From contig NW_026782721.1 of assembly GCF_031769215.1 (NCBI RefSeq), positions 434,001 through 498,000 on the forward strand: DNA of 64,000 nt, read 5' to 3'. The notes under the pieces were generated by a model, which saw only the letters and a program-made list of their open reading frames with translations, searched no databases and was not told the origin of the DNA. Positions within the stretch are counted from its first letter, which is position 1. Every line of letters starts with the position of its first letter. Source of the stretch: Ylistrum balloti (lineage: Eukaryota). Below, piece after piece: positions 29,901 through 63,939 of the stretch. The position numbers and the translations under genes were made by a program.

Positions 29901-32900
29901 AATACTGAAAAAATCAAAGTTTGGAAAAACAGAGAAATCAAATTAATGACATCAGTGCATTCTATAAATATCATATATGAACTCTGGATGAAAAAATGTT
30001 TATTGCAGACACCATTCAATTTTCTTTTGATGTAACCTAAAATGTTTCTCATTCATCCTCAAAATTTTCAGTAAATGAACAACATAATGTGTTGAAAGTA
30101 AAACAATACAGAAGGGTCATGACATTTGACCTTGAACTTTGACCCAGCCAAGGATCTGGAAATACAATCTTATGTTAGCAGAAAGCTGTGAATGCACAGA
30201 TGTTGATTTCTCCTCAGCATGACTTACCCTGACAGGAAGAGATGCCATAGTCCTGGAGGGAGTGAAGCCCAAGTCAGACTCATATCCAGATATAAACCCA
30301 ATAACGATGAGGCGGCCTCCAGTGGTCAGACTGTCCAAACAAAATCAAACACAATCAGAGGCATGACCCTTACTGGTCAGATTGTCAAAACAAAATCAAA
30401 CACAATCAATGACATGGCCTTCAGTGGTCTGACTGTCCTAGCAACATTAAACACAATCAAAGACATGGTCTTCAGTGGTCAGACTGTCCAAACAACATTA
30501 AACACAATCAATGACATGGCCTTCAGTGGTCAGACTGTCCAAACAACATTAAACACAATCAAAGACATGGCCTTCAGTGGTCAGACTGTCCAAACAAAAT
30601 CAAACACAATCAAAGACATCGCAGTCAATGGTCAGACTGTCCAAACAACATTAAACACAATCAAAGACATGGCCTTCAGTGGTCAGACTGTCCAAACAAC
30701 ATTAAACACGATCAAAGACATGGCCTTCAGTGGTCAGACTGTCAAAACAAAATCGAACACGATCAAAGACATTGCAGTCAATGGTCAGACTGTCCAAACA
30801 ACATTAACCACAATCAAAAACTTGGCCTTCAGTGGTCAGACTGTCCAAACAACATTAAACACAATCAAAGACATGGCCTGCAGTGGTCAGACTGTCTAAA
30901 CACAATCAAACACAATCAATGACATGGCCTTCAGTGGTTGGACTGTCCAAACAACGTTAAACATAATCAAAGACATGGCCTTCAGTGGTCTGACTGTCCA
31001 AACAATGTTAAACACAATCAAAGACAGGGCCTTCAGTAGTCGGACTATTCAAACAACATTAAACACAATCAAAGACTTGGCCTTCAGTGGTCGGACTGTC
31101 TAAACAAAATCAAACACTATCAATGACATGTGTCCAAGATAGTAATGTTAAGACACCAGAAATAAATTCTAAAAATGTTACCTCAGAAGACTTAAGGATG
31201 TTGTACTTACCTGTTCAAACAAGTGTCGAATGTTTCTCCTCCGACTGACTCGTAAACAACATCAACACCTTTCTGTGGATTAACCCAAAGGATTCTTACT
31301 CAAATGTAATGTAAATCTAATGTAAATCAAATAACAAATTTTTCCTCACATTATATCAATCTGATTTAAATAATTGTGATTTTAAATAAAATTCAAAAGA
31401 CTTAGAAGAACTTTTAATGTTCAAATCCTGTCCATCCTTTCTCATACTGAACATAACATTGGTGATTTTTTTTTCTCAGAAACAACATTTTATTATCAAG
31501 GATGAAAGGAAGATAAACAGTTGAAGGTCAAATAATTGACCCTGGGTCAAAGTTATTTCGATGGAAACTATGACTCACCATCATGCATTGTGTTTATTTG
31601 TTTTTGTTTGTTAATAGATTCTTTTGAGATTTTTATTTTAACACATTTGACTGCAGTAAATGTTTGGTCAAGGTCACTTCAGGTATCATAACCTTATGGG
31701 TCTCATTTAGAATCAATTTTTCAAAGACTTTAACACCTTTGATGTCTGTTACTTTGAAAGCTGGTCAAAATATCCGTCTGGCCATAAGTTAAGGACCATC
31801 AATTGCACTATGAAAATTTTAATCAAACTGATTTTTCCTTTGTTATACTCCTTTTGTGTTTGAAGCTGTATGCAGCCAAGCCATGGATCAAACTTAACAA
31901 TAACATGGATTAAACAAGGGTACCCAATACTGTAGCAAAACACAAGATTGCTTTGGCACCTAAAACAGCATTTACATGTGTATTACTGGTAAATCATACA
32001 CATGTTCATACTGCATGTTGAAGTTGACAAACGCTGAAAGATGACTAATCAAAACTGGGTATGTTGACAAGCAACCCAGGTCTAGCAGACCTTGGAAGAC
32101 ACAGATAGAGAAGTTAGACAGGCAAGGTAAGCTCCATTCACCACGGCCAATAGGCACAGAGGCTAAAGGAAGGTTCACATCAGCCAACGTACCATCAACT
32201 GATGTTTGAACAATTGGCGACCGCCCTCTTGACGACCAGCAAAACATGTTCTGTTGACTGGAAGGCATAAACATGCAAGACTGCAATGGGCACAGGACCA
32301 TCAGGCATGGAATATCAGGCCTTGGCGAAGAGTTCACTAGTCTGATGCTGCTTAAGTCTGACAGACAGCAGGGCATGTTTGTAGACCAAGAAACACAGAA
32401 CACCATCAGAATCACATTCAGAGCACAACAGCATTTGGTGTAAGCGGTGTTACTGTATAGTGATATTTTTCTCTAAACTTCAGGTTTGCTTGCATGTTCT
32501 TAATTGAATTTTAAATAGGCAGAAGTACCATGATCAGATCCATCCCTTAAGCCTATCTTAATGGATAACAATGCTAAACCACACAGAGCTAGTTGAGTAC
32601 ATGACTAACAGGAAGTGACAGAGACACTCCCACTGCCTGCAATACTATGAGATATGAACCCAACTGAGAATGTCTATCTAGGACAAAAAGTCAAAGCACC
32701 GGATCCCAAATGCCAAACAATTAGAGAATTTCTGGTTGCGTTGATTCAGGAATGGCAGAGGTTTACTCAGAACAAGCTTCAGCATCTGGTCAATGGTATG
32801 AGAAGATAGGCACAAGAATCCCTGAATGTATGGTACCTATACCCAATATTGACATTTTCATACCCAATAGAACTTGTTGATAAGTTCATTTTCTTGATCA

Positions 32901-35900
32901 AGAAAAATGTTCCTTTTAAATGATACAGCACCTCTGGTTCTGTATATTTCCCTTTCCAGTTGCCAGTGAATGTTTAAATACAGAGAACATAATTAAGCCC
33001 AATGTAAGATGTCGGTGGTGCTTTACTTACGGGCAAGTGTACATTTCTAACGAACAAATTTTTGACAGCCCTATCAGCAGGTGAGCTAAAAATGAAATAC
33101 CTAGTCCAGGGATTCAAACATGTAGAAAAAGAATTGTTTGATATGAGAAAATATTACCTTATATTCTGTTTTCAAAACAGTTCGTAAATCTTCCTTTTTG
33201 TAATTTATGGGTCGGTCACATCCTAATTTCTAGAAAAAAAAATCATCAGGAATCAAATAATTTCAATAAGAATTATAATAAGAAACGCACAATAACAATA
33301 TATCAGAAAATGAACTGATTTATCAAGCATATCAAATACGCACTGTTAACAGGAGAAATTATACTTTCCCCTTTAAAAAGTTCACAATGGTTATCTTTAC
33401 TTTTACATATTTATCTAGCAGAGATTCCAACTTGCTCTCTATAGTGTTCAACTTTACTCGTATATTTACGTATATATAGGAGAGACTCCACCTTCCCCTC
33501 TTTAGTGTTCAACTTTACTCGTATATTTATGTATATATAGGAGAGACTCTAACTTCCCCCCTAAAATGTACATCTCTAGCCCTATATCTATTTTGCAAGT
33601 GTATTGTTACCTTGAGAAATTCCACCTTTTCCTCTGTAGAACATGTTCCAATAACATGACAGCCAGCTTTCTTTGCCCACTGTACCTATAAATCCAAATA
33701 CGTTGTTTTATTAGAATTGAGAGCGTTGAATTCTATGGAGGGCAGATAGGTCCTTATTTGATAAAACATTGTGACCTTTAGTATCTTTTCCACTGTACTT
33801 TACTGATGTGATAGAACAGAATTGACTTATATAAACCTGAGGAAAATAACATTAAAGCTAAACAAGACGATTATCCAGAGACCAACATAACATGGATACA
33901 GACATACTTTTGAAGTAGTTTTCCTGGTAACTTTTTTGACAGACAAACATGGTATTTAACAAGATTGTGCACAAGATACTTACAGCAAACTGTCCTGTTC
34001 CACCTGCAGCAGCTTCAAACAAGAGAAAAAGCTACAATAAATCTTTCTATAACCTAGGACTGATAATAAACCTTCCCATACCTATAACAATAAACATCAT
34101 CACCTACTCTATCATGTACATCATATATTGGCAGAATTAATATTTCAACACATGAATTTTTTAAACAGTAACTTCTTCAAATAATAAATACATTATTTAA
34201 ACAGTATCTCTACATATTACAGTATTTAAATCTATAAGCATGAATATAATGCTGATCTAAATGTAATAATTACCAGTGACCAAGACAGTCTCTCCTTTCT
34301 TCAAATTTCCAAACTGAAAACAGCAGAGTGAAAATGTTTTATTGGATAAGACATCTATTGATATACCTTACATATTCATAATTTGTGGAAATGGACAGAA
34401 CAAGAAAAACATCTTGCTGTTAATGTTCTTGACTGAAAGAACGCCTCTGTTCTCTTGTTATGGAACCATTCTCTTTCAAGAAAGGTGAACAGCCATACAC
34501 TTACATGTAGCATATTTTATGAAAAATGTGTCAAAATCAAAGAAGAAATATATGGAGGAAGAAATGATAAAAGCAATTTTATTTGTTGTTATTGTCTCAC
34601 CTTTTCTAAGGCAACAGTTGCTGTGGGTCCACTTAATTGGAATGGCAAGAACTCTGGGGAGGCCGTCGGAATCTTGGTCAGGAGTCTGGCTGGTACTTTC
34701 TGTAATTATGTAGTAGACCTTATTTACACAACAGTATTTCCAAGATCTGGCCTTAATCTCTGCCACATATTTTTCAAGGGATACTGCAAAACACCCTTTA
34801 TTCATTCTGCTCATAAACATCCCTTTAGACTCTGCTTTCCCTGGGAGACTACAGTTTGGCAATCTACACTGAGAAAGGGTTATCCTCTAAGGCCCATCGC
34901 TTCTTAAAGATGTTGTTCCGTAAAGTCCAACTGTCATACATTTGCACCTGGCTGTTCTAGAGCAGTCATACTATTTAGTCATCGTCCCCAGCTAGGAAAT
35001 TTAATTAGGTCTTACTTTCCCAAGATAGATCATACTCTTGAGTAACAGTTTCCTTGAAGAATCCAGCCCTTAAAATGTTTACAAGCCACCAGTATTGCCA
35101 ATTCACATGATTTTGTCAGGTCGGTCTGATACTGGACTTGTTCAAATCGTGGAAAATTTAAGAATCACTCGATATTTCTTTGTTTTTGACCAGTTTTGAA
35201 AAATTTCAAAATCTATTTCTGAATCTAATATTAGTCAAAATAGTATTCAAACATGAAACATCATCTCATACACATATACTATTATACAATAGAGTTAACT
35301 ATATTTTCCTTTACAGTTGCAAGGAGACACTGAACCCTGAACTATCAAAAGTTAATATATGAGTGAAGTAAATTATTCAAGATTGTATTCACTTAGACAT
35401 ATGTCAGATTTTTTAGTCTTAATTAATTTTTAATTTAAATGCCAGAATGAGACTAGCTAAATTTGTAACTGACATCTATCGACCAGTGGGAAAACTATGT
35501 ATTGACCAGTGGCCAGAGGCATACTGTTGTTACTTAATATATACATGGTCAATGTTATAAATGTATTTCCTGATTACATAAGTTATTACCTAAGCTCATG
35601 TATTAATCTTTGTTAGTCTGTTTATCTATTGTGTAAAGTTACTTTACCAACAATTTTTTAACTTTTTGGTATAAATAGACTTCTCTTGGCTTACTAGAAG
35701 AGAAGAGCAAAGGCCAGACAGGAGAGAGGCTAGTTTCCACTGTCAGGACAGCTGTTCGCTCAGGCTTCTGCCTGAACAGTTTGGATGTAATTTGTAAATA
35801 TATACACTTATATATATAGGATATATATAGGACAATCTACAATTAACATGAAGACCAGAAGTTTGACTTAATTGTCATCACTACACTATAAGTCAACAAC

Positions 35901-38008
35901 ATCAAAGCACATAATAGGAAAACATATATTTCATCATAACCCCTTAAATCAATCTAAATACATGTGTATTTCTATCCCATGTAATTTCATTACATAGCAT
36001 ATTTGAAATTCCATTAACCATATAGTTTTCAAGCAAACCTTGCATTTCTCTAGTATTAATTATCAGGTTCAACGTTCAAGAAGTGATTATAAAATGTACC
36101 ACATAGTCTGCAAAACTGCCATTTCTACAGTACATGACAGCTTGACCTGGAGATATGTTGACCCCTGAGCCCACGCTGACAACCTCACCAAGGCCCTGTG
36201 TTAATGAAAAGCAGAAACTAATCATGGATATGAAACAGATTGAATTACTACTGTAGAAAATTGACGTATCAGTGGAACAGTTTCAAATACATCCGTTTCT
36301 TTCCTAAATCTCTGAATTTTATTTCAAATGTTTACAAACTGTTTTTAATTTGGAGGACAAGTTTAAGTATTTTCACAATCCAAATGCAACCTTTACATGA
36401 AACTTGAATTGTCAATGGTATGATGTTGAGGAAGCTTGAGCAATTGAAGTTCTCACCTCCATTCCACAGACAAACGGTGGTTTGATAGACGGATCATATC
36501 TCCCTGCTGTGTAATTTATATCAGAAGCATTGATACCAACATATCTGCAATAAAAGATGCCATATTTGTCACATGTTTAAACTTATAATTTAGCAACACC
36601 ATTTCTCTTATACATACAAAGTGTCAAAGTATTCATTTTGGTTTGTTTAGGTTTTTTGTTTATGTATGTGGTAAATATTCTGTCTATCTGAATGTCTTAC
36701 GCTGGTAAAACCACAGGGGCCTGTAACAATGTTTTTTTGGAAACATTAAATAAAGCTTTTAGACTCTCGACTGGAATGAGAGTTTGTGTGGAATAATATA
36801 CCTCGTACTGTGTGTACCCTGGATGTTTAAACCCATACTACAATGCGGACTGATTAACGAACAGTACTCATATATGTAAAAGAGATCTAGCCCGCCTTGA
36901 TGCATTAGCAGATATCACGACAAAAGTTTCTAACCATGTAAAAAAAATGTAAATACATGCATGTTGGTAAGCCTAATCTGAGTGAAACCATATATACATT
37001 GAACAATACTGTGCTGGAGAATTCTGAATGTGAAAAAGACATTGGTATCAAAGTAGACTCAAACCTATCGTTTGAAGATCATATAAGTGAGAAAGTCAAT
37101 AAAGCCAATTCCATGTTTGCCATGCTTCGGAGAACTTTTAACTTTATGGACAAAAAATCATTCCTACCACTTTATAAAACCCTAGTGAGAACGCATCTAG
37201 ACTTCGCTAGCTCAGTATGGTTACCTTATAAAATAAAAGATATTGAGAGAATTGAAGGAGTGCAGAGAAGGGCAACAAAACAACTTCCAGGCCTTAAAAA
37301 CTTATCTTACGAGGACAGACTAAAAGAATTAGGATTACCAACCCTCGCTTACCGCAGGACAAGAGGAGACATGATCGAGACATACAAGCTAATGAGTGGA
37401 ATATATGATAAAAATACAAACAACATACTTATAAGCTGGAGCAGCGCTGCAAGCAGGAGTAGCAACAGGACAAACTCAAACAAGATCTACCCCCAGAGAG
37501 CTAGAACAAAACTTAGGCAACATTACTTCTCTCACAGAGTATGGAAAGTATGGAACAACCTACCAGAATATGTAGTCAACGCACCCAACACTAACACATT
37601 CAAAAATCGCCTGGATAAACAATGGAAACACCAGGAGCTGTATTACAGCTACAGAGCAGATATAAAAAAGAATGGAAGTGACAGAACTACATTGATTAAC
37701 AACAACGAGTCCGGTGAAGAGGAATTTTAATTCCTGTACTGGAAATCAACTATAAGTAACTATAAGTATGACAAAATCTTAACCTTGTTGAGTAAATGAA
37801 TAGATAAGACTGCACACGTGACATTGAATGCTAAACTTTTCGCATTTCCCTCAATGTCAGTTATTTGTTCTAACCTGTTCTTCACTAAAACCTCCCCTGG
37901 TTGCAATTCCTTCAGGGGAGCTTCAACGATTTTAGTTATATCTCTGAACTTTGGACTAATTTGTGTAGCTATTAGTCTTCTGACAGTTCTTGGGACGTGC
38001 CCGGCCAT
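26949..38008 (-). CDS. PTGR3: Prostaglandin reductase 3 / ZADH2-like medium-chain dehydrogenase (352 aa, 12 coding exons, C-terminal SKL)
   Basis: Exons 38008-37875, 36544-36457, 36195-36100, 34699-34601, 34313-34274, 34012-33984, 33685-33611, 33229-33158, 31272-31211, 30330-30228, 29501-29316 and 27023-26949; all GT-AG and in phase (1059 nt). Motifs [57 protein letters not shown] and [11 protein letters not shown] match ZADH2. Confidence 0.93.
27080..27460. mobile_element. Bivalve HINE-like repeat fragment in the last PTGR3 intron
   Basis: Repeated aaagggcaataa subunits and a gacggatggacggacaaagcagcaact..tatgctcccc end, typical from memory of mollusc non-autonomous elements. Confidence 0.4.
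28172..28710 (+). mobile_element. Degenerate Tc1-family transposase, N-terminal half
   Basis: [40 protein letters not shown].., [32 protein letters not shown]; it carries frameshifts and stops. Confidence 0.75.
30305..31130. repeat. 51-bp minisatellite (about 16 units) built from the PTGR3 exon-10 splice acceptor
   Basis: Minus-strand unit ...gttgtttggacag|TCTGACCACTGAAGGCC vs the true junction ttttgtttggacag|TCTGACCACTGGAGGCC at 30331/30330. Confidence 0.92.
31771..33041 (+). mobile_element. Near full-length degenerate Tc1 element (about 1.27 kb) in PTGR3 intron 8
   Basis: Remnants [48 protein letters not shown] and [16 protein letters not shown]; decayed TIRs tatccgtctggccataagttaaggacca (31771) and ggtgctttacttacgggcaagtgta (to 33041). 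Confidence 0.72.
33400..33640. repeat. Decayed ~61-bp repeat (3 units) resembling the 3' end of PTGR3 exon 7
   Basis: gagactccaccttcccctctttag (33482) vs exonic gaaattccaccttttcctctgtag (about 33616); similar units at about 33420 and 33542. Confidence 0.55.
36945..37770 (+). mobile_element. 5'-truncated CR1-clade LINE (ORF2 C-terminus) in PTGR3 intron 1, antisense to the host
   Basis: Open frame of 257 codons: [84 protein letters not shown]; the 3' end has a short tandem (aactataagt)x2 tail. Confidence 0.9.
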
Positions 38009-38652: not shown

Positions 38653-40270
38653 ATGAGCTACATCACAAAGCTCTTGTGGGTTTTACCTGGCATCTCTGTG
38701 CTCTTCTTTTCTGTTGGTCTGTCCAAGACTTACAAAATTTTGGGAGAGTGGTTGAACCTGAACACAGTGGCTAACATAACATGGATACGTGTATCTAAAT
38801 GCTAAGTAGAGATAATGTGACAAATTAATTAGTTTCCGATGCCTTCACTGGCACTTGAGATTAGCGGTCGATAGGGGCTTATTTTGAACTTTTCAGCAGA
38901 TTTCTGAATAATAAATACAGAGGAGGATAAAAAAAACTGCTGGTAATTTTATTAATTTGCTTCGTAAAATGAATTTAGTTAGATTTACAATTAATACAAA
39001 TTTTGAAATCTGCAATATTTTTTTCATTCAATTAATTTAAAGAAATTTTGTTTTGTTTTTTTAGATTCAAAAGAAGTCTTCAAGATTTTGCTGTTTGATC
39101 TGCTTTTAGTTGGAGTGTTTGTATTACAACACAGCTTGATGGCAAGTCGTTTGTACAAAGAAATGATTGGGAGTAGGTTAGGATTCCTGCAGAGATCAGT
39201 ATACACAATACTTACCTGCATTATTCTTCAGGTAACATTGAAATTTTCACACATATGGTAACCGTGTATAACTATCAATTTTAGAATATGAACAAATTTA
39301 AATACAAATCTTTATCACTTGAGACAGACTTTTCATTCTGTAGAGCATCCTCAGAAATAACGAAGCATTGTTCCTTCAGATTGTGTGCAGGCATGGTGCT
39401 AATATGTCTTTGTTTTTAATCTCACTTGCAGTTTTTGTTTGAAAATTGGAAGACAGTCAGTGGATGGGACATATGGTTTTGGGACCTTCATGATTCTCCT
39501 GTTACTTCCCTTTTCTTTTCTTTGGTTCATACTGTTGCTTGGTGTTTCCTTGCCCTAGAACATGCACTGATAGACCCCTTCTACCTCATAGGGGTGAAGC
39601 AGGTCAGTAGAATTTCAGAAAGTTTTGTTACAATCACTAATTAGGGTGAGGACAATAGTTTTTTGTGTTGTCAATTATATATAATTATCAAATTTCATTA
39701 TAACCAGCTAACCAAGAAAGTAAGGTCACGACAATAACATTGACCTCAATGTGATGTTACCTTTTATCTTTACTGAAATTATAGTTGACACAAGCATCTT
39801 ATACTGAAATCTGGATGGAGAGAGCTGCATGACTAAATGCTCCATCAATTTTTTGTAAAATTGAAGTTGAGGTATACCCAGAACAGATTTGTTAATAAAC
39901 ATAGTTTGTTGATATAATATTTATATTTTAATACCGGTATGCCTAAAATACACAATCAATATTTTTGCTTTGCATTATACAATTACTGTTACAGGTATAC
40001 TATCGACTGTGGGGTGACATGTCACCCTGGCAGTACATGTCTCGGAGATTACAGAGTTTCATCACTCACATGCCACACCCTGGTGTTCTGTGCTTTCTCA
40101 TCCTTTTGTGGGTGTATCCACACATGTCCCTGGACCGCTGGCTAGTGTCTACTCTCCTTACCTGGTACACCTGTCTAGGACTTGGACAGGTCACAAACAA
40201 GGACTTTGTCTACATAGAGGAACAGACCAAAGTCAGAATGACCACTACTGCAAGACATATGGCTGCTTGA
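38653..40270 (+). CDS. NRM: Nurim (inner nuclear membrane protein), 249 aa, 4 exons
   Basis: Exons 38653-38788, 39065-39231, 39432-39602 and 39995-40270, in phase. Motifs FDLLLVGVFVLQHSLMA, LGFLQRSVYTILTCIILQ, LIGVKQVYY, HMPHPGVLCFLILLW..PHMSLDR match nurim. The exon-1 donor (C|GTGTAT) is weak and is the least certain junction. Confidence 0.88.
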
Positions 40271-40760
40271 AGGCTGTGTAATGATGTGATGTAAACTGCC
40301 TATAGGAGACTGAAGCTGCTATCACTGCTTGAAGGCTGTGTAATGATGTGCTGTAACCTGCCTTAAGGAGACTGAAGCTGCTATGACTGCTTGAAGGCTG
40401 TGAAATAATGTGCTGTAACCCGCCTAAAGGAGACTGAAGCTGCTATGACTGCTGGAAGGCTGTGTAATAATGTGCTGTAACCTGCCTAAAGGAGACTGAA
40501 GCTGCTATGTCTGCTTGAAGGCTGTGTAATAATGTGCTGTAACCTGCCTAAAGGAGACTGAAGCTATGACTGCTTGAAGACTGTGTAATAATGTGCTGTA
40601 ACCTGCCTAAAGGAGACTGAAGCTGCTATGGCTGCTGGAAGGCTGTGTAATAATGTGCTGTAACCTGCCTAAAGGAGACTGAAGCTGCTATGACTGCTGG
40701 AAGGCTGTGTAATCATGTTCTGTAACCTGCCTAAAGGATACTGACGCTGCTTCTGCATAG
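40263..40760. repeat. 62-bp minisatellite (about 8 units) starting across the NRM stop codon
   Basis: Unit ctgcttgaaggctgtgtaataatgtgctgtaacctgcctaaaggagactgaagctgctatga; the first unit contains the TGA at 40268-40270. Confidence 0.92.
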
Positions 40761-43700: not shown

Positions 43701-43989
43701 AAAAAGAGCAGACATGTCCCTGATTTTCAGGCAGTGTTGATATATAATACTGAGAGCTGCAGTGTCGCCAAACTCATACCAGGTCAATGTCCTTCAAAAT
43801 CAAAGATGACTGAGGTGCAGTAAAGGAAAAAGACCCTATAATCTATTGTATAGTAAATTATCACATTTTGATGATATTTTGTTATATTTTAACATTATCA
43901 AAATGTCAAAATTCATTTTGAAAATTTCAAGTATTGACAAACTCAAATATTGGGTGATTGAAACAAAGGTTATTATTTATTTCAATGAT

Positions 43990-44312
43990 CCGCTGAGATT
44001 CAAACCCAGGATCCTGGCTTATTAGTCTGATCGAACTAAAGAGAAGCTCTCTTTAGCAGAGCGGTATATTGCAGCTAATATTCTCCAGGGTGACATACTC
44101 TCCTACCAGGAAACAACTTGTCCAGCAATACTTGTGAAAGTAACGCCAAGTACTATTCCCGAGTCCCTACATGGGCACCAATGTAACAGAGGTCCTTACT
44201 TATTTCACTGCCTCCGCTAGGATTTGAACCTAGGACCACTGGCTTTCTAGTATGACACTCAACCCATCGAGCTAAAGAGAAGTTCTTTCTAGCCAAGTGG
44301 TATATTGCAGCT
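43990..44312 (-). mobile_element. Two tandem tRNA-derived SINE head fragments
   Basis: B-box-like gggtttgaatctcagcgg and ggttcaaatcctagcgg, each preceded by a shared tagctgcaatatacc...ctctttag block, about 225 bp apart. Confidence 0.5.
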
Positions 44313-45492
44313 ACAGGGTTACAATAGTAACATTTGTCATGATTTAAAATGTAAGGAAATATCAGGTGGTACTAACAATTTTTCAAAGTTTAAGCTAGTC
44401 ATGATACAGCCAACATCAGGTTGACCTGACAGAGCTGGTGAATTAGGGACACTGAAGCTGGTGTTTTATAATCATCAGAAATAAGGACACAATATTAACA
44501 CACAGCTTACTATAAACAGTGAAACACTGAACAAGACTAGTGTGAATATTACCAGAATAGAGTGAATATTTACTAGGTGATGGTTGACAAAAAAATGTGA
44601 AAAAATCCTAGAAATGGTGAAACAAAATGTTGAAATTGCATGTTTGATAACAAAAAAAGGTCTATTTTATATCTACAATATTTGCAAAAGTATGTTAATT
44701 AACTGAACTTATTACTCAAAATTTGTTTATTCAATAGAAAAAAAACTGTTGTACAGATAAACAATATGTTGTGTATATGGAATTTTTGAGTCTGTATTGA
44801 AGAACTTTAGATATACTGTACTAATATAAAATATTCAGACTAAATGCACAAAATTTGGCTGTTAGTAGATTTGAAAACAACCAGGCAGTATTATCATCTT
44901 CATCATCATAAATCCAAGTACACAAATGCATTAATGCCCTGAGGATGGATTATAATGCTCTTTGGCATTGTTATTCATAACTAGGTATCATAGAGGGCAA
45001 TAATTGGGAAAGATCTCAACAATGACATTTTTATAGAAGTACAAGCATGCATATCAGGTACATGTCTCACTAAAATAAACTTCTTTATGTTCTTGGTAAA
45101 CAGATACCATGTTAACAATACATTAGAAAACAAATTATGGACTATCCTAGATTAGGTAGAATGTAATTTCTTTAATTTACTGAAATGTGCTTTTAGGGAA
45201 TTTCTGTCATATCAACATCTCCATCTCAAGTCTCAAACATTTTTACTACTTGTCTATTGTTATGAACTTGTATAATTACCATTAGGTATACTGCATGTAA
45301 TTGATAGCTCAAAGAAAATCAGTACATTTTTAACATTAAGTGACATTTTGATAGATGGGGTAAATTACCCCAAAATTATAGAGATGTAGACTTTAATGGT
45401 CCTTGAATGGAACCTTAATGACATCGCCAAAATACACACACAAGGTTATCAGCAAAAGCAGTGAATAATTATACTACAGAACACAAGTCCTT

Positions 45493-45496
<4 letters not shown>

Positions 45497-45525
<29 letters not shown>
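45497..45525. repeat. Poly(A) tract, 29 nt
   Basis: Direct reading of the sequence. Confidence 0.9.
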
Positions 45526-52700: not shown

Positions 52701-55700
52701 AGTTTAGCACAAAAGTTGACACCATCACTGATGTTGCTGAAAAATTAACAACTATGCCTGCCTCTGTCGCAAGATTTTTTCAGTGTTTTATATAGCTAGT
52801 GCATTTAAAATTTTTTGCTTGTTATCTGTTGTTGATATCAAGGTCAATAAAATGATACCAGAATCTATAAAATCTCTTGTTGTAAATGCACAGTATCCTG
52901 TCAAAAAAGGAAATATTGGTGAATCACTTACCTTTCTCCGATACCAGTGATGACTGGAAACAAACAATTTCTCCTAAGGACATGACAACCTTAACAGGCA
53001 TGATGGCGTAGTCTCCATGTATATTGATATAATCTGCTAACCAGGGATTCTGTTTGTCCCAAACCTGTAGAGAAATTCATTGGACATTGGTTAATGAAAC
53101 AGGAAATCATGCGATACCACAAATTGAAGAGTTTCCCAAATAGTGAAAACAAGATCAAAATATTTCTTTAACCAATGGAATCTACTGACATGTGCCTAAG
53201 TATTATCCCAGAAATGGCTTTTTATCATGGAGCAACAAACAGAGAGGTTTGTAATTATCCAGATATTTGTGGTAGGTCTCACTTGAAAAACACATCCTCT
53301 GGCAAATACTATTCATAAAATTCTGCGAGGCTAAAGAAAAATCTTTTCAGCTTGATAGGTTGAGTGCGATACTGGACAAGATAGACTTTACAACCCTAAG
53401 GAATCACTTACCTTGAGTATAGTTTGGCCAACATCTGAGACCTTGACAACAAGGGTATTATTTTCTACGCCATAACCAGCTTGTACCAGATCATACCTAG
53501 TAAATGTACAAATCACTACTATACAAGAATTTGATGGAATTCCACTTTGCTTTCAGCACTTTGGCTAAACAAAACACTGAAATAATCAAAATCTTTTCAC
53601 ATTTAAATGTACATTTTTTATCAAACATTTGTGCAAAATAAGTCAATTTAAAAATATTTAAAGGAGATCCAGCAGTATTCTAAAAACAAGTTTGGACAAA
53701 AGAAAAAAAAATTGTTTCATAAATTTCATAATGCCGTAAAAACCCACGTAATGTCCGCATCTGTGTAATGTCCGCACCCCTTTTTTGACACAAAAATCTG
53801 GGGAAAAAATCCACCTTCCATGTAATGTCCGCGGGTAAAAAATGCAAATTGAAGCTGCCGATTTCATTTCACGTACGCTAATGTCGTAATGGCCGAGAGC
53901 ATGTCGCATTGTGTATAACTTACAGGTACCATTCAAGAATTCACTTAATTGTTTATAACAACAGTTATTCTCCATAATGATACAGTAAGCTTACCAGTAT
54001 GACAAGTCCTCATTTCGATAATTGGTGTTTTGATAAGGGTTAGCCCAGCAGTGTTATAAACAGCTTGGGTCGTCTCCTCACCTCGAGTGTGAGTGAGTGA
54101 CAGCGTGTGATTAGCCAATTCACGATAACTATACAGTAACATGACCCGCCCATGACCCACGGCGCCACTGACCCTACTGACACACCATCAGACGACGAGA
54201 ACGCCATTTATTACAACGACCAGACAGAGGAAGACAACTTCAACGCCAAGGAGTTCTTCCACAGTGACGACGACGACTTCTGGGGTTTTTCGAGAAACGC
54301 TATTAAACCGGCCTGCTATGTATTAAGACTTTCTGATAAACGATCCATAATCAATAAAACGTCTGATTATTTATTTTATGTAATATTCTTGTACATGTTA
54401 TTTATTGTTATTTTGTAAATAAAATGTAGAATGAAAATGTTGTGTTATTTTGTATATGCTCATGGGTATGCTTTTTCAATGGGGAAAGGGGAATAACTCT
54501 AACTTTATTCATGTGACAAAGTCAAACAAAATGGCTTCCTATTACGAAGGACGACACAATACGAACTTGTAACGAGAAATTGGAAGGAATTAGCCATGGA
54601 AACTATAATAAATAATCATAAATAATCATGTTTGGTTGAGGAAACATCATAGGAAAAACCATAGAACGATAATATCAGGTATGCTTGGCTTTTAAGAACA
54701 CAATTCAAGGAGATATGATATGAATTGTCGGAAGGAAAAAAGTGTCATTTCCTCTATATCTCTGTAATGTCCGCACCCCCTTTTTTGGATTGATTTTCGG
54801 TGAAAAAAAGTGTGGACATTACATGGGTTTTTACGGTAAATAAAACTTATGCCACCTCCTCCTATACACATATAAATAAATTAACCAAAGTAACAAATTT
54901 TACCTGCTAAATCTGTAACGCATTTTCACATTTGTTGCATAAAACTTTTCTCCAATGTTGTCATGGTAACTGATAGATAAATGAAGAGTACTTCCAACTG
55001 GAATCTTTTTCAGCAACCCTCCAGAAGTCCTCAGTTTAGTGTCAGAATTGATCATCATGTAGGAAACAGGTTTTACCTAAAGGACAAACAGATATATAGG
55101 TTTTACCAAAAAGGTCACTGAAAATATACAGGATTTACCTAGAGGTCACAGAAATATACAGGATTTACCTACAGGTCACAGAAATATACAGGATTTACCT
55201 AGAGGTCACAGAAATATACAGGATTTACCTACAGGTCACAGAAATACACAGGATTTACCTAGAGGTCACAGAACTATAAAATAATTAACTAGAGGTCACA
55301 GAAATATACAGGATTTACCTAGAGGTCACAGAAATATACAGGATTTACCTAGAGGTCACAGAAATACACAGGATTTACCTAGAGGTCACAGAAATATACA
55401 GGATTTACCTACAGGTCACAGAAATACACAGGATTTACCTAGAGGTCACAGAACTATAAAGAATTAACTAGAGGTCACAGAAATATACAGGATTTACCTA
55501 GAGGTCACAGAAATATACAGGATTTACCTAGAGGTCACAGAAATATACAGGATTTACCTAGAGGTCACAGAAATATACAGGATTTACCTAGAGGTTACAG
55601 AAATATACAGGATTTACCTAGAGTTCACAGAAATATACAGGATTTACCTAGAGTTCACAGAAATATACAGAATTTACCTAGAGGTCACAGAAATATACAG

Positions 55701-58700
55701 GATTTACCTAGAGTTCACAGAAATATACAGGATTTACCTAGAGGTCACAGAAATATACAGGATTTACCTAGAGGTCACAGAAATATACAGGAATTACATT
55801 GAAGTCACAGAATTATACAGGTTTACCTAGAGGTCACAGAAATATACAGGATTTACCTAGAGGTCACAGAAATATACAGGAATTACATTGAAGTCACAGA
55901 ATTATACAGGTTTACCTAGAGGTCACAGAAATATACAGGATTTACCTAGAGGTCACAGAGATGACCTTGATGAGAAGGATGAATGTATGAGACAATAACC
56001 TTGATGAGAAGGATGAGGGTAAGAGACAATAACCTTGATCAGAAGGATGAGTGAGAGAGATAATGACCTTTATTAGAAGTACTAATGTCTGGTTAGTACC
56101 AAACTCCTCCTGAGATGTGATGTGGAGGGCAGCCTCTCCAGCCTTTGGTCCAGAAATCAATAAGCCTCCATCTCCCACGGCAACGACCCTCTGGTCACCA
56201 CTAGATGGCAGTACTGTGTAGCTCACTTTGGCTGCCCCATCTCTATTGAATTATAGAAGATTTCTGAGTGTTAGTACTGTGTTAACATCGACCTGTACAA
56301 GTCTTGTAGTACATTGGTGACTTATTGCCACCACAGTTTACTGTCTTCATTTACACCCAAAAAACAAATCAATAAATATCTGTTGATATTGCAATCAAGA
56401 ACTTCATATAACTTTAATATAAAAAGCGAACAATTTATGATTGCTTGAAGTGTTTGAATGTGGAGATTTGTAATACCTGTTTGTTTTGATGACTGCCTCG
56501 GTGTTAGGAGTCATCAGAAGTTTGCCATCACACACAGACGGACTGATCACAGCAAGCTTCTGGAACACCTGAAAATCAACACCAATAATCACAATGAAAT
56601 GTAACATGACTAAATATCATTTCATTACGAGACTATGACAGAAATAATAAACGTAAGTTATAGTACTGTGACAGTGTTAGTGTCTGTTTGCTGCTCCTCC
56701 AATTGATTACTGTTGTACTAATTTGTACTCTTTGCAGCAAAATAAGAGATCATGTGATAAAATTTCATTGCACTAAATCAAGGATGTTAACAGTATTTTT
56801 TAGATTCATGTATCATGATCTCACAAATTTTTTTTTTAAAAAGTTACCAAGTCAAAACTGTAGGTCACTATTTCTCCCTTCACTTAACAGACCCTTCCTC
56901 AATCTGTAGCTCACCACTACTTCATTCTCTTTACTGACCCCACTTTTATCTGTAACACATCAGTCCTGTGTACCCCTAACTAACCCTACCTCAATCTGTA
57001 ACACATCAGTCTCTGTACCCCTAACTGACCCTACCTCAATCTGTAACACATCAGTCCTCTGTACCCCTAACTGACCCTCCCTCAATCTGTAACACATCAG
57101 TCTCTGTACCCCTAACTGACCCTCCCTCAATCTGTAACACATCAGTCCTGTGTACCCCTAACTGACCCTACCTCAATCTCTAACACAATAGTCCTGTGTA
57201 CCCCTAACTGACCCTACCTCAATCTGTAACACATCAGTCCTCTGTACCCCAAACTGACCCTACGTCAATCTGTAACACATCAGTCTCTGTACCCCTAACT
57301 GACCCTACCTCAATCTGTAACACAATAGTCCTCTGTACCCCTAACTGACCCTACCTCAATCTGTAACACATCAGTCCTGTGTACCCCTAACTGACCCTAC
57401 CTCAATCTGTAACGCATCAGTCCTGTGTACCCCTAACTGACCCTACCTCAATCTGTAACACATCAGTCCTCTGTACCCCTAACTGACCCTACCTCAATCT
57501 GTAACACATCAGTCCTGTGTACCCCTAACTGACCCTACCTCAATCTGTAACACATCAGTCCTGTGTACCCCTAACTGACCCTACCTCAATCTGTAACGCA
57601 TCAGTCCTCTGTACCCCTAACTGACCCTACCTCAATCTGTAACACATCAGTCCTCTGTACCCCTAACTAACCCTACCTCAATATGTAACACATCAGTCCT
57701 GTGTACCCCTAACTGACCCTACCTCAATCTGTAACACAATAGTCCTCTGTACCCCTAACTGACCCTACCTCAATCTGTAACACATCAGTCCTCTGTACCC
57801 CTAACTGACCCTACCTCAATCTGTAACACATCAGTCCTCTGTACCCCTAACTGACCCTACCTCAATCTGTAACTCATCAGTCCTCTGTACCCCTAACTGA
57901 CCCTACCTCAATCTGTAACACATCAGTCCTCTGTACCCCTAACTGACCCTACCTCAATCTGTAACACATCAGTCCTGTACCCCTAACTGACCCTACCTCA
58001 ATCTGTAACACATCAGTCCTGTGTACCCCTAACTGACCCTACCTCAATCTGTAACACATCAGTCCTCTGTACCCCTAACTGACCCTACCTCAATCTGTAA
58101 CACATCAGTCCTCTGTACCCCTAACTGACCCTACCTCAATCTGTAACACATCAGTCCTCTGTACCCCTAACTGACCCTACCTCAATCTGTAACACATCAG
58201 TCCTCTGTACCCCTAACTGACCCTACCTCAATCTGTAACACATCAGTCCTCTGTACCCCTAACTGACCCTACCTCAATCTGTAACACATCAGTCCTCTGT
58301 ACCCCTAACTGACCCTACCTCAATCTGTAACACATCAGTCAATATGTAACACTCTGTGTACCCCTAACTGACCCTACCTCAATCTGTAACACATCAGTCC
58401 TCTGTACCCCTAACTGACCCTACCTCAATCTGTAACACATCAGTCCTCTGTACCCCTAACTGACCCTACCTCAATCTGTAACACATCAGTCCTCTGTACC
58501 CCTAACTGACCCTACCTCAATCTGTAACACATCAGTCCTCTGTACCCCTAACTGACCCTACCTCAATCTGTAACACATCAGTCCTCTGTACCCCTAACTG
58601 ACCCTACCTCAATCTGTAACACATCAGTCCTCTGTACCCCTAACTGACCCTACCTCAATCTGTAACACATCAGTCCTCTGTACCCCTAACTGACCCTACC

Positions 58701-61700
58701 TCAATCTGTAACACATCAGTCCTGTGTACCCCTAACTGACCCTACCTCAATCTGTAACACATCAGTCCTCTGTACCCCTAACTGACCCTACCTCAATCTG
58801 TAACACATCAGTCCTGTGTACCCCTAACTGACCCTACCTCAATCTGTAACACATCAGTCCTCTGTACCCCTAACTGACCCTACCTCAATCTGTAACACAT
58901 CAGTCCTCTGTACCCCTAACTGACCCTACCTCAATCTGTAACACATCAGTCCTCTGTACCCCTAACTGACCCTACCTCAATCTGTAACACATCAGTCCTG
59001 TGTACCCCTAACTGACCCTACCTCAATCTGTAACACATCAGTCCTCTGTACCCCTAACTGACCCTACCTCAATATGTAACACATCAGTCCTGTGTACCCC
59101 TAACTGACCCTACCTCAATCTGTAACACATCAGTCCTCTGTACCCCTAACTGACCCTACCTCAATCTGTAACACATCAGTCCTGTGTACCCCTAACTGAC
59201 CCTACCTCAATCTGTAACACATCAGTCCTGTGTACCCCTAACTGACCCTACCTCAATCTGTAACACATCAGTCCTGTGTACCCCTAACTGACCCTACCTC
59301 AATCTGTAACACATCAGTCCTCTGTACCCCTAACTGACCCTACCTCAATCTGTAACACATCAGTCCTCTGTACCCCTAACTGACCCTACCTCAATCTGTA
59401 ACACATCAGTCCTCTGTACCCCTAACTGACCCTACCTCAATCTGTAACACATCAGTCCTCTGTACCCCTAACTGACCCTACCTCAATCTGTAACACATCA
59501 GTCCTGTGTACCCCTAACTGTAACACACCCTGTGTACCTCAATCTGTAACACAATCTGTAACACATCACTCTGTAACACATCAGTCCTCTGTACCCCTAA
59601 CTGACCCTACCTCAATCTGTAACACATCAGTCCTGTGTACCCCTAACTGACCCTACCTCAATCTGTAACACATCAGTCCTCTGTACCCCTAACTGACCCT
59701 ACCTCAATCTGTAACACATCAGTCCTCTGTACCCCTAACTGACCCTACCTCAATCTGTAACACATCAGTCCTCTGTACCCCTAACTGACCCTACCTCAAT
59801 CTGTAACACATCAGTCCCCTGTACCCCTAACTGACCCTACCTCTGTAACACAACACACACATCAGTCCTCTGTACCCCTAACTGACCCTACCTCAATCTG
59901 TAACACATCAGTCCTCTGTACCCCTAACTGACCCTACCTCAATCTGTAACACATCAGTCCTCTGTACCCCTAACTGACCCTACCTCAATCTGTAACACAT
60001 CAGTCCTCTGTACCCCTAACTGACCCTACCTCAATCTGTAACACATCAGTCCTCTGTACCCCTAACTGACCCTACCTCAATCTGTAACACATCAGTCCTC
60101 TGTACCCCTAACTGACCCTACCTCAATCTGTAACACAATAGTCCTCTGTACCCCTAACTGACCCTACCTCAATCTGTAACACATCAGTCCTGTGTACCCC
60201 TAACTGACCCTACCTCAATCTGTAACACATCAGTCCTCTGTACCCCTAACTGACCCTACCTCAATCTGTAACACATAAGTCCTCTGTACCCCGAACTGAC
60301 CCTACCTCAATCTGTAACACATCAGTCCCTGTACCCCTAACTGACCCTACCTCAATCTGTAACACATCAGTCCTCTGTACCCCTAACTGACCCTACCTCA
60401 ATCTGTAACACATCAGTCCTAACTGTACCCCTAACTGACCTAACTGACCCTACCTCAATCTGTAACACATCAGTCCTGTGTAGCCCTAACTGACCCTACC
60501 TCAATCTGTAACACATCAGTCCTCTGTACCCCAAACTGACCCTACGTCAATCTGTAACACATCAGTCCTCTGTACCCCTAACTGACCCTACCTCAATCTG
60601 TAACACATCAGTCCTGTGTACCCCTAACTGACCCTACCTCAATCTGTAACACATCAGTCCTCTGTACCCCTAACTGACCCTACCTCAATCTGTAACACAA
60701 TAGTCCTCTGTACCCCTAACTGACCCTACCTCAATCTGTAACACATCAGTCCTGTGTACCCCTAACTGACCCTACCTCAATCTGTAACACATCAGTCCTG
60801 TGTACCCCTACCTCAATATGTAACACATCAGTCCTGTGTACCCCTAACTAACCCTTCCTCAATATGTAACACATCAGTCTCTGTACCCCTAACTAACCCT
60901 TCCTCAATATGTAACACATCAGTCCTCTGTGCCCCTAACTGACCCTACCTCAATCTGTAACACAATAGTCCTCTGTACCCCTAACTGACCCTACCTCAAT
61001 CTGTAACACATAAGTCCTCTGTACCCCTAACTAACCCTACCTCAATCTGTAACACATCAGTCCTGTGTACCCCTAACTGACCCTACCTCAATATGTAACA
61101 CATCAGTCCTCTGTACCCCTAACTGACCCTACCTCAATATGTAACACATCAGTCCTCTGTACCCCTAACTGACCCTACCTCCATCTGTAACACATCAGTC
61201 CTCTGAAACCCTAAGTAACCCTAAACCCTACCTCAATCTGTAGTTCATCAGTTAGCTGCATATGACCGCTAACTTGGATTTTCTGGAATCTTGCTGGGCT
61301 GACCTCCAGCTTGACTGTCACCCTTCCAGGTTCCCTAGCAACCAGCTGGTTGGCAAAGTCACTCTGTTCTGGAGGAAAGACACCACTCTGCAGAGTAAAA
61401 ATCAAATCAAAGATTCATAACAAGCATTTCAGGTTGACATTAGCGGCTGAGAACAGTTAATGGAATAATAGAAAATTCTCTCACAAGAGTGAGAGCTGTT
61501 TACTACAACACTGATCTGGACTATAATAGCACACACAATCCTGCAGTTTCATCCAATAATATACCAATAACTCACCGAATGGAAGACGTTCTCGAGAAAG
61601 ACAACATCTTTGTTGGAGACGGACCATGAGAATGTGAGTGGTGGGATGGCACTACCAAATGTAAACGGAGTCTCATGTTCTGTTGTTCCGACAGCATACA

Positions 61701-63939
61701 TGGGCATCTGGATTACACAGGGGAAGGAAACTGTTAGCAATTATACAGGTGGTATTTTGTTTTTGCTTTCATTTATGACAAAATGGCTATTTTACCCAAA
61801 TTAAAACAGGTTTTTACATATTTTAGAAAATGACTATGTTAGACAAATGAGAACTAAAAGAACACCATCCTCTAAATAATCAAAATATCATATTCCTGGA
61901 GGACATGTAATAAACCTGAACAGTAATGTCATTTCCTTACCATTAATGAAAAGATTGAGAAATGCCAAAACGTTGATAATAATACCTCCACTTACCCGTG
62001 TGCCAGTTTGTAGACGTGTCAGTGGGGCGTGGATTCTGATGTCAGTCAGAGGCACAACATGTACCTGTGCTTCATCCTGGGGGCAAAAAACAAAGTATTA
62101 TCTCTTAGAACACAACTATCACTCCTTGCAAGTCCAACCCAATCAAAAGACTTGGCATCAGTCTCTTGATATTTAAATAGCTTTTTGTACAGAAGATAAA
62201 AATCTTTATTTATTATTTATGTTATTGAGCAAAAAGTCTATAATGAATAAATTTTCACCTGTGAATATATGATTGTCTCTCCCGTTTCTGGGTCTTGACC
62301 TACAGCTTGACCTATGACCCTTGTTGAACCCAGTTCTTGAGCATCAAGTAGTCCACTGCTTGAAACTAAAGCGATGTCATCATTGGCGATTGAGAAGAGC
62401 ACTGTACACTGAGGAGTGGGGCCACCTTTACTGAGCACCTGAAACAGAAATCACAAACCTATCAATTTGATACACTGAGGGGTGGGGCCACCTTTACTGA
62501 GCACCTGAAACAGAAATCACAAACCTATCAATTTGACACACTGAGGGGTGGGGCCACCTTTACTGAGCACCTGAAACAGAAATCACAAACCTATCAATTC
62601 GATACATTGAGGTGTGAGGCCTCATATGTTTGCTTACCTGGAAGAGTGCTCCAATAATCAGTGTAATATTCTGAGGTATTAGCTGGAGTGGGGGAAACAC
62701 CTGCAATATAACATTCATTTGTTACACTTATTCAAATTGAGAGTGAAATATAATACATATGATTATCTAATTATGTCAGAAATTCAAAATGATAAACATT
62801 CAGTCCACTGTGAAAGACATTATATTATAGCATAAATATGTAGGTAATTTCTGTTATTTTTATCTTTTTGTTTATGGCTTACAAACCTTATTCTACGATC
62901 ATCACTTTGATGTCTAGAGGTCTCACAGCCATTCATTTTTATTATCTACAAGTTTCTTGTTAATTATTTTACATATAAATATTCATAATGAATAATTACT
63001 TTCCTGGATACCTACCTCAACAGCTTTGGCAACACTGGTCACTGCAACATCAGGTCTGGGCGTCGCCCGAGCCTCTAGGGAGGTGTGGCCCACTATTGCT
63101 CCATGTACAGTGTAGAATGCAGTGAATCTGTCTTCTGCTGCCTCAAGATCAGGCCTGACAGATGAAACACAAGTTCTGAATGTCTATGTAATGTAATGAG
63201 ACAGAATCACAATGGAGAAGAAACTCAGACATTTTAAAAAATCCCTTCATCGCGCCCCTCAACGAGATGATGGTAAATGCAGGCATCAGTCAGAGTTGGG
63301 GAAAGAAACTTGCCTGTAGTAGTAGTTAACTATTACATAAAACCAGAACATGGCCCCATCCTTATTCACAGGTACTTGTCTGAGGCCCATTGGGGCGAAA
63401 ATTGCCTGCATTGGTTAATTCTTTTATTATTCTCATACAAGTCCCCATTCCTACTTACTTAACTGTGATGATGGTGGATGCAGGCACTAGCCGGAGGCCA
63501 ATCAAGGGGAAGAAGCTAGGCTTTAGTGAGTAATTATTGTATAAAACCCCTACAGAGACCCATCCTAACTCATACTTACTTAACTGTGATGATGGTGGAT
63601 GCGGGCACTAGCCGGAGGCCCATCAAGGGGAGGGGCTCGCCTGTAGTGAGTAATTATTGTATAAAACCCCTACAGATACCCATCCTAACTCATACTTACT
63701 TGACCGTGATGGTGGATGCGGGCACCAGCCCCATCAAAGGGAAGAAGCTCGCCTGTAGTGAGTAATTATTGTATAAAACCCCTACAGAGACCCATCCTTC
63801 CTTACACTTACTTGACTGTGATGATGGTAGATGCAGGCACCAGCCGGAGGCCCATTAAGGGGAAGAAGCTTGCCTGTAGTGGTTTACCATGCATATCCAA
63901 CACCTTCACCTTGGCCTGAAAGTCCTTGCCAACTTCCAC
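46737..63939 (-). CDS. NUP210: Nuclear pore membrane glycoprotein 210, last 20 exons (5' part lies beyond the window)
   Basis: Exons 63939-63812, 63154-63016, 62700-62638, 62438-62259, 62076-61996, 61707-61576, 61387-61232, 56568-56477, 56242-56068, 55076-54904, 53496-53412, 53064-52932, 51893-51760, 50984-50861, 50315-50169, 49636-49383, 48429-48210, 47785-47672, 47149-47051 and 46873-46737; all GT-AG and in phase. Motifs VFPPLQLIPQNITLIIG, GGPTPQCTVLFSI, TPFTFGSAIPPLTFSWSV, a single TM helix (WLFIILVIILTALAVIIG) and a short tail with LWSP match gp210. Confidence 0.93.
48415..49210. repeat. 76-bp minisatellite (about 11 units) built from a NUP210 splice acceptor
   Basis: True junction ttctgtag|GTCTATGTGAGTGA at 48430/48429; the repeat units read tttgtatGTCTATGTGAGTGA. 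Confidence 0.92.
51115..51332 (+). mobile_element. tRNA-derived SINE with a (cctaa)n tail
   Basis: A-box-like gtggtcaagtggttaagg, B-box-like gggttcaaggcc, body ggtcggt..ttttctct..aacctggcacatccttaaatgatcctggctg, tail aacctaacctaacctaacc. Confidence 0.6.
51955..52270. repeat. 35-bp minisatellite (about 9 units) in a NUP210 intron
   Basis: Unit cacactactgcatagtctctgtctcatgtgtttta; it ends about 60 nt from the acceptor at 51894 but does not include it. Confidence 0.9.
53732..54838 (+). mobile_element. Non-autonomous pogo/Tc2-type DNA transposon (about 1.1 kb) with 28-bp TIRs
   Basis: Left t(g)ccgtaaaaacccacgtaatgtccgca; the right end, reverse-complemented, is taccgtaaaaacccatgtaatgtccaca. Internal tgtaatgtccgc sub-repeats and a transposase-type acidic tail remnant EFFHSDDDDFWGF. 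Confidence 0.8.
55065..55960. repeat. 30-bp minisatellite (about 29 units) built from a NUP210 splice acceptor
   Basis: Sense unit tatatttctgtgacctctag|GTAAATCCTG vs true tatctgtttgtcctttag|GTAAAACCTG at 55077/55076. Confidence 0.92.
55958..56085. repeat. ~35-bp repeat (3 intronic units plus the exonic one) built from a NUP210 splice donor
   Basis: True CTTCTAATAAAG|gtcatt; copies CTTCTGATCAAG|gttatt, CTTCTCATCAAG|gttatt and CTTCTCATCAAG|gtcatc. Confidence 0.8.
56945..61255. repeat. 46-bp minisatellite (about 93 units, 4.3 kb) built from a NUP210 splice donor
   Basis: Sense unit ACTGATGTGTTACAGATTGAG|gtagggtcagttaggggtacagagg vs true ACTGATGAACTACAGATTGAG|gtaggg at 61232/61231. Confidence 0.95.
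62405..62610. repeat. 66-bp triplication of a NUP210 acceptor plus exon start
   Basis: tttctgtttcag|GTGCTCAGTAAAGGTGGCCCCAC with exon starts at 62438 (true), 62504 and 62570. Confidence 0.92.
63455..63880. repeat. ~120-bp repeat (4 units) containing the last ~70 nt of a NUP210 exon plus its donor
   Basis: ..CCATCATCACAGT(C/T)AA|gtaagt with the donor at 63811 (true) and copies near 63699, 63579 and 63458. Confidence 0.9.

Follow-up and report, generated by a model that had tools for sequence, protein, structure and literature searches.

Tandem arrays of exon edges and splice sites in scallop NUP210 and PTGR3 as likely by-products of tolerated duplication

Why should an intron come to be filled with copies of its own splice site? 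The question is raised by a 64,000-nucleotide (nt) stretch of the genome of the scallop Ylistrum balloti (contig NW_026782721.1, positions 434,001 to 498,000), which we refer to as the window and to whose positions all coordinates relate. The genes carried by the window are NUP210 (amino acids (aa) 988-1908), a gene for a 246-aa membrane protein and PTGR3. Comparison of Tandem Repeats Finder (TRF) output with the exon map reveals that eight tandem arrays, six of them in NUP210 and two in PTGR3, consist of copies of an exon edge together with its splice site. An initial annotation, made from the letters of the DNA, saw in such arrays the trace of a systematic mechanism that amplifies splice junctions. 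Our analysis suggests that they are most likely a tolerated by-product.

The identification of these arrays depends on accurate exon borders. Translation of a 58-aa exon led, at 100% identity, to a 1908-aa protein, XP_060082895.1, the nuclear pore membrane glycoprotein 210-like of Y. balloti, and 20 minus-strand blocks between 63939 and 46740 reproduce every one of its residues 988-1908 exactly. Borders derived from the exact match to the annotated protein and then refined on GT-AG gave 19 unambiguous introns. PTGR3 was identified through a PDB match to human prostaglandin reductase 3; its borders were obtained from open reading frames (ORFs), PDB and Pfam matches and reading-frame logic, and are partly hand-derived. 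The 246-aa membrane-protein gene has its last exon between NUP210 and PTGR3 on the plus strand, and its C terminus and stop position are conserved in three other scallops. The features are collected in Table 1.

Table 1. Tandem arrays and gene features of the window, with the composition of the repeat unit and the authentic site from which each array departs
Feature	Position	Strand	Defined by	Unit	Authentic site
112-bp donor-derived array, NUP210	63452..63881	-	TRF, sequence, exon map	70 nt exon end + donor + ~42 nt intron	donor (first intron base) 63811
66-bp acceptor-derived array, NUP210	62405..62621	-	TRF, sequence, exon map	33 nt intron end + ~33-34 nt exon start	acceptor 62439
46-bp donor-derived array, ~93 copies, NUP210	56933..61255 (TRF 56933-61223)	-	TRF, gapped exon alignment	~24 nt exon end + donor + ~22 nt intron	donor 61231
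34-bp donor-derived array, 3.5 copies, NUP210	55961..56079	-	TRF, exon map	holds 12 nt exon	donor 56067
30-bp acceptor-derived array, ~30 copies, NUP210	55066..55959	-	TRF, exon map	holds 11 nt exon	acceptor (last intron base) 55077
76-bp acceptor-derived array, 10.6 copies, NUP210	48416..49215	-	TRF, exon map	holds at least 14 nt exon	acceptor 48430
51-bp acceptor-derived array, 16 copies, PTGR3	30314..31130	-	TRF, hand-derived exon border	34 nt intron end + 17 nt exon	acceptor 30331
61-bp donor-derived array, decayed, PTGR3	33344..33630	-	TRF, alignment vs shuffles	holds exon end (~21-26 nt)	donor 33610
62-bp array, 8 copies, stop codon of 246-aa gene	40258..40751	+	TRF	begins 10 nt ahead of TGA	TGA 40268-40270
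35-bp array, 9 copies, ordinary intronic minisatellite	51954..52268	-	TRF, alignment		
NUP210 exons, aa 988-1908, 20 exons/19 introns	46737..63939	-	exact match to XP_060082895.1		
PTGR3 (ZADH2-like) gene, ~12 exons	26960..38008	-	Pfam ADH_N + ADH_zinc_N fragments; PDB 2C0C, 2WEK match		

All of the arrays listed in the initial annotation were recovered by TRF. The eight junction arrays run head to tail with 3.3 to 93 copies and 82-95% matches; donors gave rise to those of 112, 46 and 34 bp and to the decayed 61-bp array, and acceptors to those of 66, 30, 76 and 51 bp. In each of the eight the unit combines an exon edge with its splice signal and the array terminates in the authentic junction, an organization that defines the 'mirages' described in amphioxus and that is absent from the 35-bp array. 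For the 46-bp array, the homology of the unit to the exon is supported by a gapped alignment with z=5.7. In the 61-bp array the exon end recurs three to four times in the intron, with copies at 33505, 33444 and 33378 whose alignment scores of 21-27 compare with shuffle means of 13-16. The PTGR3 acceptor that seeds the 51-bp array is fixed by an upstream in-frame stop, by the lack of any other AG and by length conservation relative to the human protein, and the exon that it opens begins with LTTGG, aligned with LATKG in human. By local comparison the units align with the adjoining conserved exon edge, which is not what characterizes a transposon-borne satellite.

The straddling of junctions that the initial annotation had reported is therefore confirmed for the 51-, 76-, 30-, 46- and 66-bp arrays, for an array given there as ~120 bp (112 bp) and for the decayed one (61 bp). 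Its 35-bp member has to be withdrawn, since this array stops 60 nt short of the acceptor and its unit has no homology to the spacer or to the exon (P about 0.6). The array that had been described as seeded on a stop codon is also borne out: TGA is kept in five of the eight 62-bp units, and the stop that it starts from is the one conserved in the three other scallops; no such array lies at the corresponding place in Pecten, Mizuhopecten or Argopecten. TRF scores the 76-bp array equally well with a 3-unit higher-order period of 224 bp, and the 62-bp array with one of 183 bp, a pattern typical of unequal exchange.

To place the arrays in time, we fetched the NUP210 loci of ten further species (Pecten maximus, Mizuhopecten yessoensis, Argopecten irradians, Crassostrea angulata, Mytilus trossulus, Mya arenaria, Mercenaria mercenaria, Pinctada imbricata, Lottia gigantea and Branchiostoma) and placed their exons through exact matches. 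The intron positions of the window NUP210 recur in the same phase at 19 of 19 sites in the other scallops, at 18 of 19 in oyster and mussel and at 14 of 19 in amphioxus. Judged by these conserved positions, all 19 introns are ancient and predate the arrays, which makes the arrays secondary growth within old introns. The growth has been considerable, as the initial annotation surmised when it spoke of a route to intron expansion. Arrays make up 49% of intron nt in the window part of NUP210, compared with 28-46% in the other scallops and 5-25% in the other species, and the 46-bp array alone provides 4.3 kb of a 4663-nt intron whose orthologue measures 320-438 nt in other scallops and 119 nt in oyster. 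Two ancient introns consist almost wholly of copies of their own borders: in the 199-nt intron at 62439-62637 the 66-bp array extends to 16 nt from the donor, these 16 nt being the only non-array sequence, and at 55077-56067 the 34-bp and 30-bp arrays jointly account for 990 of 991 nt, leaving ~1 nt. The orthologues of the two introns in other scallops measure 340-518 nt and 672-932 nt, respectively, so that in both the old intron interior has been replaced. A further suggestion, that the arrays might yield new exons, found no evidence in this analysis.

The same comparison of orthologous introns in bivalves, which the initial annotation had proposed, separates one shared array from five that are specific to the lineage. 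Mizuhopecten (30 bp) and Pecten (28 bp) have arrays homologous to the 30-bp acceptor array at the corresponding acceptor, with copy numbers of 30, 8.8 and 29.6 in Y. balloti, Mizuhopecten and Pecten, respectively; Pecten and Mizuhopecten also have arrays in common at two donors outside the window. The other five of the six window NUP210 junction arrays have no homologue in the other scallops, and the arrays that do lie in the same introns there as the 76-, 66- and 112-bp arrays proved not to be homologous to them.

For the question of chance, we used a null in which each array was collapsed to one unit and a seed of the same length was placed uniformly over the gene, seeds wholly within exons being left out and at least 4 nt being required on each side of a junction. 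In the window NUP210, six of eight arrays are at junctions compared with 1.57 expected (P about 8e-4), and with a PTGR3 term, which is a rough hand estimate, the figures become 8 of 10 and 1.8 (P about 1.5e-5). The window was picked for its array density, so the family-wide figure is the fairer one: among 173 arrays in NUP210 of the 11 species, 33 span a junction and 20.6 are expected (1.6-fold, P=0.0025), or 28 and 19.0 if the window is left out. These statistics rest on one gene family, NUP210, in which arrays common to scallops are not fully independent. An excess over chance, in line with the density pointed to in the initial annotation, is present at both scales. Much of the apparent density in the window, however, results from short ancestral introns, the non-array lengths of array-bearing introns being 42-760 nt (e.g. 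42, 48, 229, 339 and 418) compared with units of 30-112 bp.

The excess varies with copy number. Two-copy duplications (fewer than three copies) in the 11-species set show none, with 5 of 74 at junctions and 6.4 expected (ratio 0.8), whereas arrays of at least three copies are at junctions in 26 of 83 cases compared with 12.5 expected (2.1-fold, P=5e-5) and those of at least five copies in 18 of 51 compared with 6.9 (2.6-fold). The pattern holds at a 10-nt threshold, where the corresponding ratios are 1.1, 2.3 and 3.1. Exon sequence accounts for between 0.13 and 0.90 of the unit, with a spread compatible with uniformity (Kolmogorov-Smirnov (KS) P=0.12), which implies that there is no fixed breakpoint relative to the splice site. 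Arrays of all kinds lie ~5-6 GC points above non-array intron, and a fit on interior arrays only gave an amplification propensity of 1.9-fold per +10 GC points.

Taken together, we regard it as probable that the arrays are mirage-type minisatellites, that is, passively tolerated duplications amplified on the non-coding side. Their units hold conserved coding sequence beside the splice site, with NUP210 exon edges that are exact to the annotated protein, and the window also contains two arrays of similar make, one at a stop codon and one inside an intron. As the units themselves document, tandem duplication affected segments of 30-112 bp that chanced to hold an exon edge and its splice site or, once, a stop codon. 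The copies on the non-coding side would then be amplified by slippage during replication or by unequal exchange, as is usual for minisatellites, while the outermost, exon-proximal copy would stay in use, as is suggested by the RefSeq NUP210 model and the orthologous proteins, which use the outermost sites, and by protein conservation, and the rest would become intronic or 3'-untranslated region (3'UTR) passengers. Duplications would be tolerated at donors, acceptors and stop codons, boundaries at which reading involves the first or the last copy only, and purely exonic ones would be purged. Most of the concentration on junctions in the window would result from very fast minisatellite turnover in scallop introns combined with ancestral introns that are short for the unit size and an amplification that favors the less AT-rich exon-edge sequence; the net effect would be intron growth, with old intron sequence replaced by copies of its own borders.

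Three observations weigh against so passive an account. The uniform-seed null under-predicts even when it is weighted by GC content, which lifts the expectation from 8.6 to 10.9 where 20 are observed (P=0.0016; seven species, arrays of at least three copies), so GC content is rejected as the sole cause of the excess and passive tolerance is not the whole explanation. Different scallop genera retain homologous arrays at one and the same junction, in which selection could be involved. Most of the decoy splice sites are intact and as strong as the authentic ones, when decay might be expected of pure junk; this can be explained, because concerted evolution can preserve copies.

That the residual excess, about two-fold, is found only in expanded arrays indicates that arrays anchored at a junction expand or persist better than others; being so limited, it is not a sign that splicing creates the duplications. 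Its causes may include the GC-richer exon part of the unit, which explains only part of it, an exon-side flank shielded from erosion or deletion, transcription-linked instability during expansion, or weak selection. In a stronger form, to which we give only tentative credence, exon borders would be preferred sites of nucleation and retention of minisatellite growth, births being uniform and junction-straddling duplications being two to three times likelier to become or stay large arrays. If so, copies of an intron's own splice sites would be a main driver of size change and sequence replacement in scallop introns, and natural arrays of up to 93 identical live splice sites would be available for studying how the spliceosome chooses.

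An alternative is that a mutational process specific to junctions is responsible, in which co-transcriptional R-loops, paused spliceosomes or the chromatin borders of exon edges would lead to breaks or stalled forks and hence to preferential duplication and amplification of junction DNA. The excess that remains over the null (1.6- to 2.6-fold, and 4.5-fold in the window) is what such a process would leave, and two further features agree with it: across the 11 species donor arrays outnumber acceptor arrays (22 compared with 10, P=0.05), and the 46-bp array is strongly G-rich on the sense strand (plus-strand GC skew -0.4 to -0.6). The donor bias also fits a 5'-to-3' scanning choice of the first of several identical donors (PMC1557585), and upstream decoy acceptors would be riskier than decoy donors. 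Yet nascent two-copy duplications are not in excess (ratio 0.8-1.1), duplication ends have no fixed relation to the splice site by the KS comparison, a similar array is anchored at a stop codon and not at a junction, and interior arrays are equally GC-shifted. We therefore think this process improbable. A splicing-coupled mechanism that creates junction duplications is not supported, and with short ancestral introns accounting for much of the density, the systematic junction amplifier of the initial annotation is disfavored.

Less likely again, in our estimation, is that the repeated sites form a functional layer, selected as landing pads for U1 or U2AF, as poison sites that tune mRNA output by way of nonsense-mediated decay (NMD) or as spacers lengthening introns that are too short. 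Most decoys keep their dinucleotide and score like the real site: intact decoys number 88 of 94 in the 46-bp array and three of three in the 34-bp array (GT kept), two of two in the 66-bp array, 25 of 28 in the 30-bp array and 14 of 15, at exact 51-nt spacing, in the 51-bp array (AG kept). The 112-bp array has three decoy donors with intact GT at 63699, 63579 and 63458, with position weight matrix scores of 10.1-10.7 compared with 10.7 for the real donor, and weaker decayed copies further downstream; the two decoy acceptors of the 66-bp array equal the real one across positions -20 to +3. Nearly every decoy, if used, would bring a stop or a frameshift, the weak third decoy of the 34-bp array alone giving an in-frame insertion, and homologous arrays occupy the same junction in three genera. 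On the other hand, the other scallops lack five of the six window NUP210 junction arrays, species differ freely in copy number and unit length, and two arrays have lost every splice dinucleotide, the 76-bp array in 10 of 10 decoys (TAT instead of TAG) and the 61-bp array in all copies. In the cases studied elsewhere, human F7 and amphioxus Adh3 and globin, pseudo-sites are silent (PMC1557585, PMC3087553). Were decoy use to be found, the arrays would supply NMD-coupled regulation as well as length-polymorphic variation in splicing; they are in any case a trap for annotation, as gene predictors may choose a decoy site.

Two further explanations can be set aside as scarcely credible. One is that the array-filled introns (199 nt with the 66-bp array; 991 nt with the 34- and 30-bp arrays) are new introns made of duplicated exon, after a model attributed to Rogers in which introns are reportedly gained by tandem duplication of an exon segment containing AGGT. 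As in that model, tandem duplication supplies duplicate splice signals and the intron is repeated local sequence, with a remainder of only 16 nt and ~1 nt in the two introns, and the sequence that closes the intron ahead of the 66-bp and 51-bp acceptors is similar to the upstream exon end (7 of 9 and 8 of 11 nt). The resemblance is nevertheless short and overlaps the splice consensus, and both intron positions are present in the same phase in all scallops, oyster and mussel, with position 1369.0 found in amphioxus as well. Such a birth is refuted for the window by the conservation of intron positions: the scallop introns are ancient, and the duplications enlarge or replace intron content and create no intron. 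An apparent LFQV-LSKGG continuity across the junction of the 66-bp intron, considered as a sign of exon duplication, was rejected, since its V comes from the downstream exon and LFQ is an in-frame reading of polypyrimidine tract plus CAG.

The other is mis-assembly or over-extension of repeats, which would be conceivable in that long arrays with nearly identical units are difficult to assemble and the assembly is the only source for the copy number of the 46-bp array. The arrays are not assembly artifacts. Contigs from an independent DNA run, compared over 61150-64000, bridge the borders between array and unique sequence and differ from the window by single-nucleotide polymorphisms (SNPs); their depth is 232-369 in the 46-bp array compared with ~8 in the flanks, about 30-45 times that of single-copy sequence, and junction arrays were also found in NUP210 of the ten other species' assemblies. 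As to length variation, the contigs of this one run show SNPs and no copy-number joint, contigs being unable to size arrays.

Several other features of the comparison loci and of the window were recorded. NUP210 isoforms X1 and X2 differ in the fetched Mizuhopecten locus by a 51-nt cassette exon (19871-19921) that none of the other scallop models includes; 11 nt past its donor a 22-bp repeat begins. The 17 aa that this exon encodes have no similarity to neighboring exon edges, and it was rejected as a mirage-born exon. In Pinctada imbricata NUP210 a 131-bp, 2.3-copy tandem repeat covers a whole exon and both its junctions (aa 530-571), which is either an exon duplication in progress or an annotation problem. 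The fetched Argopecten locus has a 36-bp array of 125 copies at 42746-47214, ending 3 nt from a NUP210 acceptor, and a 32-bp array of 139 copies at 70687-75603, downstream of NUP210; both show that kilobase-scale minisatellites are common in scallop gene regions.

Within the window, a 4.9-5.3-kb unit stands five times in tandem at positions 1-26000, its copies being 93-100% identical. Each contains an intronless 547-aa ORF (e.g. 6143-7786, plus strand), which matches B-box and NHL/beta-propeller domains weakly, and two arrays, one of 49 bp with 15-34 copies and one of 17 bp with ~45 copies. By its sequence the region looks like a recently amplified TRIM-NHL-like gene cluster; a six-residue match, KVKPVS, within this macro-repeat is at chance level. 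A 25-bp array at 25921-26759 has 34 copies and a higher-order period of 240 bp; the PTGR3 stop codon is ~200 nt upstream of it, and the array probably lies in the 3'UTR or just past it. The first PTGR3 intron includes a 262-aa open frame (36942-37727, plus strand) without a Pfam match, which by eye resembles the C-terminal part of a non-LTR (long terminal repeat) retrotransposon ORF2.

Minisatellites that span a junction are natural experiments in splice-site choice, and those described here are extreme ones, with one authentic donor followed by 88 intact copies and authentic acceptors preceded by up to 25. They are also frequent enough in scallops to shape intron size, with half of the intron nt of this NUP210 region in arrays, and the dependence of the junction excess on copy number gives a testable lead on what controls the expansion or loss of minisatellites.

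How do these arrays compare with known systems? The initial annotation had spoken of single cases, naming the minisatellite of human CBS, and although that example stands, the class is broader. The mirages of amphioxus (Adh3, globins, troponin C and PGBD5) are tandem repeats across exon-intron boundaries that leave splicing undisturbed (PMC3087553, PMC3902484), and human F7, IFI6, CBS, LMNB2 and PDGF carry minisatellites at donor junctions (PMC1557585). The literature searched contained no report of such arrays in scallops or other bivalves. In amphioxus, as in the scallop, both kinds of boundary are involved, units of tens to ~150 bp span the 5' or the 3' boundary, many of them keep AG or GT, the authentic site is at the array edge and there is concerted evolution within arrays (PMC3087553, PMC3902484). 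The scallop arrays differ in occurring in a mollusc, in their much greater size (up to 93 copies and 4.3 kb) and density (eight in two genes, with 49% of intron nt), and in that one lies on a stop codon.

The 37-bp variable number tandem repeat in intron 7 of human F7 likewise has a first unit that spans the exon-donor boundary, and its identical pseudo-donors are functional in principle yet silent, only the most upstream being used, which makes it a model for 5'-to-3' choice of the first donor (PMC1557585). It has five to nine repeats with 4 nt of exon, whereas the scallop arrays reach 93 copies with 12-70 nt of exon, and its site choice is proven experimentally. In IFI6 (6-16), CBS intron 13, LMNB2 and PDGF intron 4 the donor junction is similarly reiterated 10-25 times in the intron (PMC1557585); in IFI6 and CBS the first two pseudo-sites are used and give in-frame isoforms, whereas nearly all of the scallop decoys would produce a stop or a frameshift. 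The class is therefore an established one, and the scallop arrays are its mollusc members at unusual density.

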